Assembly: GCA_026770705.1 (NCBI GenBank)
Contig: JANJGN010000189.1
Coordinates: forward strand, 806,001-870,000
Length of the DNA stretch: 64,000 nucleotides
Direction: 5' to 3'
From: Isurus oxyrinchus
Taxonomy: Eukaryota
The notes under the pieces are model-generated. The model had not been told where the DNA came from. It did no database searches and saw only the letters and a list, made by a program, of their open reading frames with translations. The position numbers were made by a program, and so were the translations under genes. Positions 19,871-64,000 of the stretch are shown here, one piece after another; the stretch's first letter is position 1; each line of letters starts with the position of its first letter.

Positions 19871-21509
19871 GGGATATTGTCTTTGTGTGTGTGTTTGTGT
19901 GTGTGAGTGAGTGTGTGAGTGAATGTGTGTGTGTGTGTGTGTGAATGTGAGTGTGTTTGTGTCTGTCTGNNNNNNNNNNNNNNNNNNNNNNNNNNNNNNN
20001 NNNNNNNNNNNNNNNNNNNNNNNNNNNNNNNNNNNNNNNNNNNNNNNNNNNNNNNNNNNNNNNNNNNNNNNNNNNNNNNNNNNNNNNNNNNNNNNNNNNN
20101 NNNNNNNNNNNNNNNNNNNNNNNNNNNNNNNNNNNNNNNNNNNNNNNNNNNNNNNNNNNNNNNNNNNNNNNNNNNNNNNNNNNNNNNNNNNNNNNNNNNN
20201 NNNNNNNNNNNNNNNNNNNNACAGAGTGAAACCTCCTTGAGTCTGGCCGCTGTGTTTAACATTTAAGCCACACAGACAGGATGTGGTTAAAAGGTGAAAC
20301 CACAAAGAGTGAGTGACTTTCTCAGTGACTGTCTCTCTGTGGGTTTCCTGTGGGTTTCTGTGAACTGCCTGTGGTTTTAAAAAAAATCTTCCAACCACAC
20401 ATGCACGGCATCAAATAAGGATTTGGAAGCTGCAGCTCAGAGAGTAACTAGTCCCCCGAGAATTCACAGCCCCTCAAACACAGATTAACAGCATTAATCC
20501 TGACCGTCAGCCCACTCACTCATTGTCTCTTGTCTCAGACACTAGAAAGTGGAAGTTAAGGCCGGATTTTCACTCCCGGGTCGGGGGACACAGAGACGGC
20601 AGGAAAAAATAACAAAATATGTCTCGAGCACACAGAGCTCCAAGGGAAGGGTCGTGCTGCAGCTAAGGTGTGAGACATGGCACATTCCCCGGATGCAGCA
20701 TTGAGGCTTGTATGTCTACACAGCTGATGTAGGTGCACATGGAACACATGTGAATGAGCACTGTGATGCACACACACCCTGGAGAGTAATATCCCTCCAT
20801 GCACTACATATCAGGCTAACATCAACTCATGTTGTCATTGCTGACTCACAGGGTTGAAGCAGGTCACAGAGACGGCTCATCTTAAACCCCTCGATTAGAT
20901 CACCCCTTAATCTTCGAGACTCGAGGGAACACAAGCCTGGTCTGTGCAACCTGTCCTCGGGATTTAACCCTTTCAGCCCCGGGATCATCCTGGTGACTCT
21001 GCACAGCACCCCCTCCAAGGACAATATATCCTCCCCGAGGTGCCGGACCCAGAACTGAACCCAGTGACTCCAGATTGGGTGTGAGGGGACCTTAATAAAA
21101 CTGTGCCAGACACTTCAAAAATCTCTTCAATTCAACCTTGTAAACGCAGTAGGAAAAATCCCACGGGGCCATTGTATCTTAGCAACATCGTAAACTTGGC
21201 CAAAAGAATCTCCCTGGTCACCCCTGAGTGTTACTCATATTGTAAACACAACGTATCGAGATCCTCCAGTCTCTGAGAAGCAAAGGTAGGACACTAGAGC
21301 ACCACCACTGGTAGGAGGCTGTAATTACAGTGTGACATGTTTACATGGGAATGTTCCATTACCAATGACACAGGAATTTAAATAATCAGAAGGACATGTG
21401 ACAACAGGAAGTGGTGCCTTGGAGAATGGAATTATTCACTAGAGTACGTATTTAATTTGATAAAAATGTACAGAAATGTCAGGGCATTTTAATTGCTTCT
21501 TTTTTGTAT

Positions 21510-23575
21510 TCATTCACTGACACTGGCTAGGCCAGAATTTATTGCCCATCCCTAATTGTCCTTGAGAATATGGTGGTGAGCTGCCTTTCTGAGCTGCTGC
21601 AGTCCCTGTGGTGTATGTACACCCACAGAACTGTTTGGGAGGGAGTAGCAGGATTCTGACCCAGTGACAGTGAAGGAACGGTGATATATTTCCAAGTCAG
21701 GATGGTGAGTGACTTCGAGGGGAACTTCCAGGTGGTGGTGTTCCCATGTGTCTGCTGCCCTTGTCCTTCTAGATGTTAGTGGTCATGTGTTTGGAAGGTG
21801 CTGTCTAAGGAGGCTTGGTGAATCCCTACGTTGCATCTTGTAGATGGTACACACCCTGCTACCAATGTGCGTCAGTTGTGGAGGGAGAGAATGTTTGTGG
21901 ATGGGGTGCAAATCAAGCAGGGCTGCTTTGTCCTGGACGGTGTCGAGCTTCTTGAGTGTTGTTAGAGCTGCACTCACCTAGGCAGGTGGAGAGTATTCCA
22001 TCACACTCCTGACCTGTGCCTTGAGGTTGATGGACAGGCTTTGGGGAGTCAGGAGGTGAGTTACTCACCACAGGATTCCCAGCCTCTGGCCTGCTCTTGT
22101 AGTCACAGTGTTTATATGGCTAGTCCAGTTCAGTTTCTGGTCAATGTTAACTCCCAGAGTGTTGATAGTGGGGGATTCAGCAATGGTGATGCCATTGGAC
22201 ATTAAGGGGAGATGGATATATTCTCTCTGGTTGGAGATAGTCATTGCCTGGCACTTGTGTGGCATGAATGTTACTTGCCACTTGTCAGGCCAAGCCTGGA
22301 TATTGTCAAGGTCTTGCTGCATTTGGACATGGACTGCTTTAGCATCTGATGAGTCATGAATGATGTTGAACGTTGTGCAATCATCAGCGACCATCCATAA
22401 TTCTGACCATCTGATAGAATGAATGTCATTGATGAAGCAGCTGAAGATGGTTGGGCCTAGGACACTACACTGAGCAACTCCTGCAGTGATGTCCTGGAAC
22501 TGAGATGACTGACCTCCAACAACCACAACCACCTTCCTTTGTACTTGGTATGAATCCAACGAGTGGAGAGTTTTCCCTGTGACATGACATGGCAGATGAT
22601 GTGTGCTTGGTGCTCCAAATGCACAAGGGAAAATTGGTCATGCTATCACAATAGTTTTGCAATTTGTATTTATTACAAGAAGTGTGCACTGAATTCAGGA
22701 GTAATGAGTTGACCACAACCTTTAGACATTTTAAAAATTCAATTAAGATATTTATTAACAAAATAAAAGATTTCAAGCACAGACATAATACCACAGTTAG
22801 TTACAGCTAAAATATATTCTCAAATTCCTAATTAACCTGACTCCCAGTTACAGAGCCTGTTTAAGGCAACAGTCCAAAATAAGATTTTAGATTAAAAACA
22901 AACCCAGCGAGTTAACACAGCACACACTTGACAGTGGAATTCTAAATGGATTTCTCCAACTTTATTTACTGAACATAACAGACTTATGCACAAATGCCTG
23001 GAGGCTTCTTCAAGCCTGTTTCACACACTCCTGTTAGATCTTACATGGCCCCCAACATAGCCTTTCATTCTCCTTTATAAATGGTTCTCACTCTTTGATG
23101 TGTAAATTCTTTGGAACTGTACCTTTCCCATAATATAAACTTTCATGTTGCCAATATTGTCAATGAAGTTTGGGTAAAATTAAAAAAAACTCCTTAGCTT
23201 TGCTTATTGGGCTTGTCCTAAACAGACCGACATCCTTTTGAAATCTAAACAACCCCTTCACACCTTACATGTTAACACAGCCTCCATGTGTTCTCATTAG
23301 CATTTCAAGTACATTTCTACATCTAGCTTCTTTTGATAATCTCAAACTTGCAGTCTACCTGACTCCAGATGTAATTAAACCACACAGACAGACACATCTA
23401 CACTCACACTCATAAACCTTGTTTACAACAAACCAGGAGAATATTAAGCAAATTATTATACTTTCGTACCACCCCTGATTCTCATTGACTCCAGTTTTGC
23501 TCGGGCTCCTAGAGGCCACACTCGGTCAAATGCAGCCTTAATGTTAAGGGCAGTCACTCTCACCTCACCTTGTAT
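21510..23575 (-). mobile_element. Non-LTR retrotransposon (CR1/HER1-like) RT fragment interrupted by a solo LTR
   Basis: LGPTIFSCFIND..VADDCT..QQDLDNIQAWPDKWQVTF; resumes after 23471 with IKAAFDRVW. Confidence 0.85.
22578..23471. mobile_element. Solo LTR (TG...CA, 894 bp)
   Basis: Begins TGTGACA, ends GTACCA, splits the LINE at ttttccc|cccctg; homologous to 49476-50401 and 62119-62680. Confidence 0.75.
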
Positions 23576-23771
23576 TAACAGATGTAAAATTATACATAAT
23601 TCATAAGCTTCTCGCCATCTTTTACAGCATGGAAAAAGGTGCAGCATTCAGAAAGCTCACTCAGAACCAATAAAAAAAAGTTCAGCAACATCTCTAATTG
23701 CACAGTCTCTGCATCCCAAACGCTCCAAAACGTCTCCTGATCCCAATCCAATCTCCTAGGGTCACAGTCAC

Positions 23772-61827: not shown

Positions 61828-62019
61828 GTGTGAAACAGGGAGCGGGGCTGTGGGGTGTGTGCAGCCAACATGGCCAAATAGTAATGAACACAAATATGAT
61901 GTTGCTCAACTTTTTTTTATTGGTTTTAACTGAGCTTTCTGAATGCTGCACCTTTTTCCATGCTGTAAAAGATTGTGAGAAGCTTATGAATTATGTATAA
62001 TTTAACATCTGTTAATACA

Positions 62020-63375
62020 AGGTGAGGTGAGAGTGACTGCCTTTGACATCAAGGCTGCATTTGACCGAGTGTGGCATCTAGGAGCCCGAGTAAAACTGGA
62101 GTCAATGGGAATCAGGGGTGGTACGAAAGTATAATAATTTGCTTAATATTTTCCTGGTTTGTTGTAAACTAGGTTTATGGGTGTGAGTGTAGATGGGTCT
62201 GTCTGTGTAGTTTAATTACATCTGGAGACAGGTAGACTGCAAGTTTGAGATTATCAAAAGAAGCTAGATGTAGAAATGTACTTGAAATGCTAATGAGAAC
62301 ACATGGAGGCTGCCTTAGCATGTAAGGTGTGAAGGGGCTGTTTAGATTTCAAAGGGATGTTGGTCTGTTTAGGACAAGCCCAATAAGCAAAGCTAAGGAG
62401 TTTTTTTTTTAAATTTACCCAAACTTCATTGACAATATTGGCAACATGAAAGTTTATATTATGGGAAAGGTACAGTTCCAAAGAATTTACACATCAAAGA
62501 GAGAGAAACATGTATAAAGGAGAATGAAAGGCTATGTTGGGGGCCATGTAAGATCTAACAGGAGTGTGTGAAACAGGCTTGAAGAAGCCTCCAGGCATTT
62601 GTGCATAAGTCTGTTATGTTCAGTAAATAAAGTTGGAGAAACCCGTTTAGATTTCCAGTGTCAAGTGTGTGCTGTGTTAATGTCCAATAGCATCACCATT
62701 GCTGAATCCCACACTATCAACACTCTGGGGGTTACCAATGACTAGAAACTGAACTGGACTAGCCATATAAACACTGTGACTATAAGAGCAGGCCAGAGCC
62801 TGGGAATCCTGTGGTGAGTAACTCACCTCCTGACTCCCCAAAGCCTGTCCACCAACCTCAAGGCACAGGTCAGAAGTGATGGAATACTCTCCACTTTCCT
62901 AGATGAGTGCAGCTCCAACAACACTCAAGAAGCTCGACACCGTCCAGGACAAAGCAGCCCCGCTTGATTTGCGCCCCATCCACAAACATTCTCTCCCTCT
63001 ACAACTGACGCACAGTGCCAGCAGTGTGTGTACCATCTACAAGATGCAACGCAGGGAGTCACCAAGCCTCCTTAGACAGCACCTTCCAAACACATGATCA
63101 CTAGCATCTCGAAGGACAAGGGCAGCAGACACATGGGAACACCACCACCTGGAAGTTCCCCTCCAAGTCACTCACCATCCTGACTTGGAAATATATCACC
63201 GTTCCTTCACTGTCGCTGGGTCAGAATCCTGCAACACCCTCCCAAACAGTTCTGTGGGTGTACATACACCACAGGGACTGCAGCAGCTCAGGAAGGCAGC
63301 TCACCCCCATATTCTCAAGGACAATTAGGGATGGGCAATAAATTCTGGCCTCGCCAGTGACAGTGAATGAATACA
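62020..63375 (+). mobile_element. Mirror copy of the LINE plus solo-LTR insertion, internally deleted
   Basis: Reverse complement of 21510-23575 lacking the equivalent of ~22205-22912. Confidence 0.85.
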
Positions 63376-64000
63376 AAAAAGAAGCAATTAAAATGCCCTG
63401 ACATTTCTGTACAGTTTTATCAAATTAAATACGTACTCTAGTGAATAATTTCATTCTCCAAGGCACCACTTCCTGTTGTCACATGCCCTTCTGATTATTT
63501 AAATTCCTGTGTCATTGGTAATGGAACATTCCCATGTAAACATGTCACACTGTAATTACAGCCTCCTGCCAGTGGTGGTGCTCTAGTGTCCTAGTTTTGC
63601 TTCTCAGAGACTGGAGGAGCTGGAAACGTTGTGTTTACAATATAAGTAACACTCAGGAGTGACCAGGGGGATTCTTTTGGCCAAGTTTACGATGTTGCTA
63701 AGATACAATGGCCCCGTAGGATTTTTCCTCCTGCGTTTACAAGGTTGAATTGAAGAGATTTTTGAAGTGTCTGGCACAGTTTTATTAAGGTCCCCTCACA
63801 ACCAATCTGGAGTCACTGGGTTCAGTTCTGGGTCCAGCAGCTTAGGAAGGATATATTGTCCTCGGAGGGGGTGCTGTGCAGAGTCACCAGGATGATCCCG
63901 GGGCTGAAAGGGTTAAATCCCGAGGACAGGTTGCACAGACCAGGCTTGTGTTCCCTCGAGTCTCAAAGATTAAGGGGTGATCTAATCGAGGGGTTTAAGA

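Follow-up and report, generated by a model that had tools for sequence, protein, structure and literature searches.

SIGLEC11 and SIGLEC16 lie head-to-head about 9 kb apart and have been shaped by gene conversion (PMC5701461). The locus described here is a 64,000-nucleotide stretch of Isurus oxyrinchus DNA (assembly GCA_026770705.1, contig JANJGN010000189.1, positions 806,001 to 870,000 of the forward strand; hereafter the window, numbered from its first letter), in which two Siglec-type genes, gene B and gene C, also stand head-to-head. SIGLEC11/SIGLEC16 and SIGLEC5/SIGLEC14 resemble B and C in being adjacent duplicates with extracellular exons kept alike by conversion, one member having an immunoreceptor tyrosine-based inhibitory motif (ITIM) and an ITIM-like motif and the other having neither. 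The members of these mammalian pairs without an ITIM have a different transmembrane (TM) segment with a charged residue and are coupled to DAP12, whereas gene B has an uncharged TM exon identical to that of gene C and its ITIM exon is simply deleted. The shark pair also differs from SIGLEC11/16 and SIGLEC5/14 in its outermost V domains, which are not homogenised (77% amino acid identity).

A second system of interest is the SIRP family. The tail of SIRP-gamma is very short, and its TM segment carries no charged residue. SIRP-gamma and SIRP-alpha resemble B and C in having homologous ectodomains, one member being inhibitory and the other lacking both an inhibitory tail and DAP12 coupling. Unlike gene B, which shows no selective constraint, SIRP-gamma is conserved, and its demonstrated ligand is CD47. 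According to PMC12975943, SIRP-alpha is inhibitory, SIRP-beta uses DAP12 and SIRP-gamma functions mainly in adhesion. Fish genomes are said to lack inhibitory CD33-related Siglecs, the fish studied being teleosts (PMC7226832). The whale-shark genome paper makes a single passing mention of Siglecs, and literature searches on shark and cartilaginous-fish Siglecs listed no dedicated paper among the titles shown.

The window is best read, with somewhat better than even confidence, as holding a real inverted duplicate pair in a gene family of fast turnover. Gene C would be a complete inhibitory receptor that has lost the lectin arginine of its distal domain. Gene B would have lost its signalling exon through a deletion at the edge of a satellite, and would still be transcribed, partly homogenised with gene C and drifting. 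Birth-and-death decay of one duplicate fits the evidence at least as well as a paired-receptor system with a decoy, which is possible and not the best reading.

In self-BLAST, 20880-38052 and 45326-64000 are reverse complements of each other over seven collinear minus-strand blocks of 86-97% identity, with high-scoring segment pairs 0.6-2.5 kb long, far above chance. From the centre outward, the right-arm segments 45326-47263, 50442-51237, 54761-55446, 55848-56413, 58618-61131, 61898-62680 and 62677-64000 pair with the left-arm segments 38052-36169 (86%), 34268-33204 (88%), 31721-31035 (96.9%), 30990-30415 (88%), 26695-24214 (87%), 23692-22912 (95.5%) and 22205-20880 (95.6%), respectively. The left arm carries gene B on the minus strand and the right arm carries gene C on the plus strand, with the two ATGs 9.07 kb apart. 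The right arm stops at the window end, and the duplication may therefore be longer. A sequence-only reading of this DNA had proposed that about 20.9-38.0 kb is the reverse complement of about 45.4-64.0 kb, that the arms hold a head-to-head pair of multi-exon Siglec-like genes with consistent splice phases, and that the host is a cartilaginous fish. All of this agrees with the arms, the complete exon sets and the relatives described below.

All similarity searches were made exon by exon. In each arm the exons follow the order of a Siglec-type gene: leader, V1, V2, C2, TM and cytoplasmic exon 1 (cy1). AG and GT sites flank all exons, and the phases are compatible throughout: 1-1 in the Ig exons, 2 at the TM donor, and 2 to 0 across cy1. 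No stop codon, frameshift or broken splice site of the kind that marks a processed or decayed pseudogene was found in any exon of B or C.

The gene C leader exon (46223-46262) encodes MIGKSYFLLSLLQ and ends in a phase-1 donor; the same 13 residues open the Cetorhinus protein XP_078389734. A strict leader-exon scan with hydrophobicity and donor rules returned nothing conserved, and a relaxed scan paired between the arms returned MIGKSYFLLSLLQ together with the identical gene B leader (37115-37154). Two V-set exons follow in gene C. V1 (50806-51180; Pfam V-set and Ig_CD22, alignment) has the essential arginine replaced by glycine in FFGIE (51111-51125), and V2 (54879-55247; Pfam and Siglec matches in PDB) contains FFRIE at 55178-55192. 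The C2-set exon (55975-56271) is supported by Pfam C2-set_2 and, through the 95%-identical C2 of gene B, by matches to domain 2 of MAG and CD33. The TM exon (59177-59273; WTVGLFTAGIMLSVFLAGIFIFICV) has no charged residue and was placed by a hydropathy scan and arm comparison. A frame at about 60.0-60.2 kb had first been taken as the TM segment and was rejected when the hydropathy scan put the TM exons at 59177-59273 and 26158-26062. Next come cy1 (60152-60233; RKTAMEERVSGTSDITLTPSPLSVKHQ), which is contiguous with TM and the terminal exon in the Cetorhinus and Carcharodon models, and the terminal exon itself (cy2, 61579-61827), 89% identical to the Cetorhinus tail. The latter encodes the ITIM LLYTNI (61723-61740) and TEYAQI (61792-61809), similar to an immunoreceptor tyrosine-based switch motif (ITSM), and then a stop.

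Five assembly gaps with short AT-rich islands occupy 56425-58126, the expected place of the gene C Ig3 exons between C2 and TM. They cover any equivalent of the three Ig3 exons of gene B. With a phase-1 C2 donor and a phase-1 TM acceptor, gene C is in frame whatever these gaps hold. Both short forms have precedents, as Carcharodon XP_041037179 joins C2 straight to TM and the Cetorhinus isoform XP_078389734 joins V2 straight to TM.

The exons of gene B all lie on the minus strand. V1 (33261-33629; self-BLAST and alignment) keeps FFRIE and has a V2-type C-C' region. It is followed by V2 (31235-31603; Pfam), C2 (30567-30863; Pfam and PDB), and three further Ig exons, namely Ig3a (29342-29623; exon model), Ig3b (28018-28299; Ig_3/I-set in Pfam, and PDB) and Ig3c (26973-27254; Pfam). 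The TM exon (26062-26158; hydropathy scan and arm comparison) matches that of gene C at 97 of 97 nucleotides, and cy1 (25102-25183; arm and outgroup comparison) encodes RKTAMEERGSGTNYIALTLRSLSVKHQ with a new motif, TNYIAL, at 25132-25149. The gap at 29184-29339 begins 2 nt past the end of Ig3a, whose donor GT is retained. This gap lies in an intron between phase 1-1 exons, and the frame of gene B is therefore independent of its content; a further Ig3 exon copy could sit inside it. The codon split between Ig3c and TM would be TGT, an unpaired membrane-proximal cysteine, and that between Ig3b and TM would be CGT (arginine).

In Pfam, all four V exons match V-set (E 2e-11 to 9e-11) together with Ig_CD22; C2-set_2 is matched by the exon that follows, and Ig_3/I-set by the repeated exons. 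The best 18 PDB matches of the V2 exon are all Siglecs (Siglec-8, -5, CD33, -10, -7, MAG, sialoadhesin and Siglec-15), with best E values of 3e-15 to 1e-13; CD33-related Siglecs and MAG score alike (3e-15 to 9e-14). Matches of the C2 and Ig3 exons include domains 2 and 3 of MAG, CD33 and Siglec-8 as well as other Ig proteins. The sequence also shows a cysteine pattern like that of Siglecs, in which one additional Cys precedes the B-strand Cys of the V-set and another, in domain 2, would form a disulfide between the domains: SCVQIPC...DCSL in the V exons and VSCTFNTTC in the C2 exon. The layout is likewise that of a Siglec, with V-set then C2-set domains, a single TM segment and phase-1 Ig exons. 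The putative sialic-acid arginine motif FFRIE occurs in B V1, B V2 and C V2, where its arginine aligns with that of Siglec-8 YFFRLE. Gene C V1 carries FFGIE without this arginine, owing to a change of AGA to GGA at 51117-51119; the basking-shark V1 keeps the arginine.

Human Siglec-12 (Siglec-XII) resembles gene C in having two tandem V-sets, then C2 domains and a tail with an ITIM and an ITIM-like motif. The essential arginine of its first V-set has been lost, which the change in gene C V1 parallels. The likeness is one of architecture, and the PDB matches of the V exon do not separate CD33-related Siglecs from MAG. Several shark relatives have been named 'Siglec-12' by NCBI.

A HMMER scan with the V2 exon against 1.84 billion representatives gave 274 matches at E<=1e-10. 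Twenty high-ranking relatives were looked up, and all are shark or ray gene models, named mostly Siglec-8/10/11/12/13/14/15, CD33-like or MAG-like, with one hemicentin-1-like and one hypothetical protein. The closest among these 20 come from Cetorhinus maximus and Carcharodon carcharias. Cetorhinus XP_078389734 has the order leader-V1-V2-TM-cy1-cy2, and its TM (90%), cy1 (89%) and cy2 (89%) match gene C over contiguous residues 263-403, giving independent support for the splice model of the gene C tail; Carcharodon XP_041037179 also matches TM-cy1-cy2. Both comparators, which are automatic gene models from other species, share with gene C a leader, V1/V2-type domains, TM, cy1 and an ITIM/ITSM tail. 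Identity to gene C is 77-84% for the V domains; for the tail it is 89% (Cetorhinus) and 75% (Carcharodon). Gene C thus has relatives with the same kind of tail, a membrane-proximal ITIM and a distal ITSM-like motif as in CD33-type receptors, and by its predicted motifs is inhibitory in type, as had been suggested. The ITIM-less cy1 of gene B (NYIAL) was absent from the 157 proteins compared.

Three side observations concern the tails of the family. In Stegostoma tigrinum XP_059497277, at residues ~1398-1463, the tail after a cy1-like segment resembles the +1 frame of the ITIM exon (..SCPAEAALSTGARTQNTQRS..), and it looks like another ITIM-less member arising by frameshift, or else a gene-model error. 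A second TM/tail cassette, EWKAGLL...GFFIF.CVRK with a tyrosine-rich tail (DIYKSC, PVYVNV), is found in Carcharodon and Chiloscyllium proteins. A contig of run X17 splices an Ig3b-type exon to this second cassette, which indicates that Ig exons and tail cassettes are combined differently across the family.

Gene B lacks the CD33-type tail. A second copy of cy2 was absent from the window (blastn word size 7; tblastn E<=100), in keeping with the proposal that only gene C has the terminal exon. About 750 bp of the gene C arm (61150-61897), holding the acceptor, the whole cy2 coding sequence and 70 bp of the 3' untranslated region, have no counterpart in the arm of gene B. Homology between the arms passes through the satellite, skips this segment and picks up in register at C 61898 = B 23692. 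At the deletion site (23693-24888; self-BLAST and Tandem Repeats Finder, TRF), gene B has 80 bp of unrelated filler (23693-23772) and a longer 33-bp satellite array (23773-24888). As the outgroup proteins carry cy2, the exon was lost in gene B. An event mediated by the satellite would account for this junction.

Downstream, gene B keeps an AATAAA (22966-22971, minus strand), the counterpart of the first poly(A) signal after the stop of gene C (62626). A search for a usable acceptor 3' of the gene B cy1 found only one weak site, at 21272. With this signal kept and no convincing acceptor, the simplest product of gene B would read through the cy1 donor in frame (25000-25101, minus strand) for 33 codons to a TGA at 25002-25000. 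In run X5, base 25002 is G instead of A, which turns TGA into CGA on the minus strand and opens the frame into a satellite open reading frame (ORF) at 23593-24999. The end of the gene B tail is therefore not fixed.

The two genes are unevenly similar. The leader and TM exons differ at 0 of 40 and 0 of 97 nt (200 of 201 nt are identical when the TM flanks are included), V2 is identical at 362 of 369 nt (7 nt and 6 amino acids differ) and C2 at 291 of 297 nt (6 nt and 5 amino acids differ). These counts bear out the earlier statement that leader and TM are identical and C2 and V2 near-identical. In cy1, 8 nt and 7 amino acids differ. At the protein level, V2 and C2 are each 95% identical between B and C; the membrane-distal V1 is only 77% identical, with different C-C' regions and a different arginine status. 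Gene C V1 is 81% identical to the basking-shark V1 and has the same C-C' patch. Gene B V1 is 91% identical to its own V2 and 77% to C V1, and the V1 and V2 exons of gene B with their flanks are 94.5% identical over 617 bp. Because B V1 resembles B V2 more than C V1, it is read as converted by V2-type sequence.

Identity per 100 bp changes along the arms like a mosaic, from 58% to 100%. Stretches of at least 97% surround V2 and the TM exon (59004-59803) and also occupy 46723-47022, next to tracts of 60-85%. The leader, V2, C2 and TM exons together diverge by 1.6%, versus 4.2% in the distal non-coding arm (Fisher p=0.0004). Differences between the exons of B and C are 18 nonsynonymous to 3 synonymous; under neutrality 76% would be nonsynonymous (excess, p=0.22; deficit, p=0.91). 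Low divergence, a neutral-looking ratio and equally similar intron flanks argue for gene conversion rather than purifying selection. The sequence-only reading had likened the locus to mammalian pairs that share ectodomains through gene conversion. This stands for V2 and C2 and for the patchy identity; it does not stand for V1, where the two genes are 77% identical, B V1 has been overwritten by V2-type sequence and C V1 has exchanged its arginine for glycine.

Polarised with outgroup proteins, which carry the C-type cy1 (TSDIALTPSPL), 6 of the 7 cy1 amino acid changes and all 5 C2 changes fall on the gene B lineage. In V2, about 4 changes fall on the C lineage and 2 on the B lineage. The probability that 21 random substitutions create no stop codon is 0.42, so the intact frame of gene B says little about its maintenance. 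The pattern suggests that gene B evolves without selection.

The stretch of gene B is present in sequencing runs of two closely related organisms. The four runs compared all consist of contigs. Run X5, probably RNA, has 93 Mb of contigs in total; the genomic run X1 has 5.2 Gb. At >=97% identity, X5 covers 29 of the 30 bins in 24889-29183. The covered sequence takes in the read-through region 24889-25092 as well as introns, and these introns differ by 6-16% from arm C. The loose ends of some X5 contigs correspond to exact exon-exon junctions (TM to cy1, Ig3b to Ig3c, and Ig3b to TM). Depth could not be used to assess expression, as the DNA run X1 shows the same exon/intron contrast through pile-up of paralogous exons; junctions and coverage of unique introns were used instead. 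These data suggest that the gene B locus is transcribed, and gene B is probably still expressed.

Several contigs at this locus do not follow the exon models. The X5 contig with the Ig3b-type to TM junction either skips Ig3c or stems from a paralogue. RNA contigs also join an exon ending in ...GGAAC to an Ig3b-type start (loose ends 28299 and 28018), and Ig3a ends in ...GGAAT. Such contigs may come either from an Ig3b-like exon hidden in the gap 29184-29339 or from gene C or another paralogue. Over 26700-26972, X5 and X6 contigs follow the window before they continue into unrelated sequence (255 nt in X6), the break coinciding almost exactly with the start of arm C homology at 26695. The break at 26700 could be an insertion/deletion polymorphism or a paralogue breakpoint.

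A course of events can be proposed for the pair. A head-to-head segmental duplication inside a shark Siglec gene cluster, probably of lamniform affinity, would have copied an inhibitory CD33-type receptor with two V domains, consisting of leader, V1, V2, C2 and Ig3 exons, an uncharged TM exon, cy1 and an ITIM/ITSM exon. Gene C would retain this ancestral structure in full. After the duplication, a deletion beside a 33-bp satellite array removed about 750 bp from gene B, including the acceptor and all coding sequence of the terminal exon. Its product would be only a membrane receptor with a tail of cy1 and intron read-through, without ITIM or ITSM, and the uncharged TM segment would leave it no means of recruiting DAP12 or FcR-gamma. 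Patchy gene conversion would have preserved near-identity in the leader, in V2 and C2 and over some 0.8 kb surrounding the TM exon, and would also have overwritten B V1 with V2-type sequence. Gene B would then be a signalling-dead by-product of birth-and-death evolution, with neutral-looking coding changes and a fast-changing tail. It could still dilute or compete with gene C, without evidence of being kept for that role.

Several points weigh against this account. All nine coding exons of gene B and its 16 of 16 splice sites are intact, although this is weak evidence. Diversifying selection, a frequent finding in immune receptors, could explain the 18:3 excess equally well, and the comparison of the ectodomains is partial because the Ig3 exons of gene C are hidden in gaps. 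A change of aspartate to tyrosine in the gene B cy1 creates TNYIAL, which fits [ST]xYxx[ILV] and resembles an ITIM or ITSM, so gene B may not be signalling-dead if the predicted motif is functional. The evidence for expression comes from contigs only, the RNA type of X5 is a guess, and its junctions are not assignable to B over C, as the two genes share an identical TM exon and cy1 start. The junction of the deletion (23692-23773) is known from the assembly alone.

The same observations can be read as signs that gene B is a maintained non-inhibitory partner of gene C, a possible but less likely reading. Gene B would either be a signal-less decoy like SIRP-gamma or signal through TNYIAL, and would compete for shared ligands via V2 and C2. 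The intact exons and splice sites, the identical leader and TM exons, the similarity of V2 and C2 with their conversion-like tracts, the coverage with spliced junctions in the probable RNA run, and a distance of 9.07 kb between the ATGs, which resembles the ~9 kb of SIGLEC11/16 (PMC5701461), all fit such a role. The nearest analogue would be SIRP-gamma beside SIRP-alpha, and not Siglec-14 or Siglec-16. Set against this, none of the B-C exon comparisons carries a signal of purifying selection, and sharing of ligands is doubtful given V1 domains of 77% identity, of which that of gene B alone has the arginine. The gene B tail has 6 derived amino acid changes in 27 residues, its read-through stop is CGA in X5, and its exon loss is a plain deletion beside a satellite. 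The ITIM-less tail by apparent frameshift in Stegostoma XP_059497277 further suggests recurrent decay. It is rather unlikely that selection maintains gene B as a paired Siglec of a third kind, one that lacks both an ITIM and a TM segment able to couple an adaptor and that acts as a ligand competitor or a TNYIAL signaller. The independently evolved paired-receptor system with a decoy that had been put forward survives in part: an intact ITIM-less neighbour of an inhibitory gene is present and the role is possible, but the substitutions give no sign of selection (18:3, p=0.22), 6 of 7 cy1 changes are derived in B, the stop is variable and the exon was lost by a simple deletion of about 750 bp.

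It is quite improbable that the pair is an assembly artefact, with arms mis-joined across the satellite or the ITIM exon of gene B lost by collapse of the 33-bp satellite. In favour of an artefact, the assembly has many gaps of estimated length, both the 1.1-kb satellite array next to the missing segment and the satellite centre of about 7 kb are hard to assemble, and the deletion junction and the centre are seen in the assembly alone. However, the arms differ by 4-13%, with indels and private insertions of transposable elements; one reverse-transcriptase fragment is confined to the left arm (22068-22637) and another to the right arm (51401-51832). Such arm-specific insertions indicate two distinct loci and not one locus assembled twice. 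Of the nine N runs in the window, none falls within 29340-56424, which places the centre and both inner arms on a single gap-free contig. DNA contigs of run X1 cover 30 of 30 bins of B 24889-29183 at >=97% identity, the cy1 of gene B has 8 substitutions of its own, and the 3' flank is in register again either side of the deletion.

A classical activating role for gene B like that of Siglec-14 or Siglec-16, through an adaptor with an immunoreceptor tyrosine-based activation motif such as DAP12 or FcR-gamma, follows the general pattern of an ITIM-less copy beside an inhibitory one and was rejected as scarcely credible: the TM exon is base-for-base that of gene C, with no Lys, Arg or Asp as an adaptor route for the non-inhibitory member, no alternative TM exon was found in the gene B arm, and the earlier view that gene B is not DAP12-coupled is upheld.

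Gene C is a clean case of a Siglec-like receptor of CD33 type, with ITIM and ITSM, in a shark; it has two V domains, and close relatives of it occur in several elasmobranchs. Together the two genes offer a dated snapshot of family turnover, comprising inverted duplication, patchy conversion, satellite-associated exon deletion and loss of the lectin arginine in the other copy. A satellite-associated exon deletion removes signalling in one step. If gene B were maintained, it would add a class without DAP12 to the paired Siglecs. Sharks would in that case have arrived, without shared origin with the mammalian systems, at a buffering partner of the SIRP-gamma kind that gene conversion keeps similar to its neighbour. 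For now, the main value of the pair is that of a single well-resolved locus in its family, one more member rather than a new kind.

The 33-bp satellite (11 codons) occurs at six sites and in both orientations (16903-17397, 23773-24888, 29756-30447, 38518-39933, 40726-45410 and 60446-61019), and is open for hundreds of codons in several reading frames. It borders the gene B deletion, makes up the centre of the palindrome and is also found inside both arms. At the centre (38518-45410; TRF), the arrays 38518-39933 and 40726-45410 run in opposite orientations. Between them lies a unique island that includes an old relic of the gene 3' flank at 78% identity (40271-40436; blastn). Within 40073-40436, relics of this flank are 78% identical to C 61853-62021 and 75% to B 23569-23692, and also 84-86% identical to 63519-63581 and 21299-21361. 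By similarity, these relics suggest an older third copy of the duplicated unit beside the satellite. A local hairpin of ~425 bp at the inner edge of the left arm (38053-38478) is 81% identical to its own reverse complement.

Outside the duplication, an ORF at 8989-9396 on the minus strand has a weak V-set match (Pfam E=0.0033) and 29% identity to the V2 exon (tblastn), without the FFRxE motif. It may be a further divergent Ig-receptor exon. A motif scan of the window for a hepcidin-like cysteine motif found none. A tandem array of about 4.4 kb at 10419-14863 has a copy spacing of ~70 bp and an extreme C-over-G skew (GC skew down to -0.91), and it contains long open frames of Ser/Leu/His/Thr-rich repeats.

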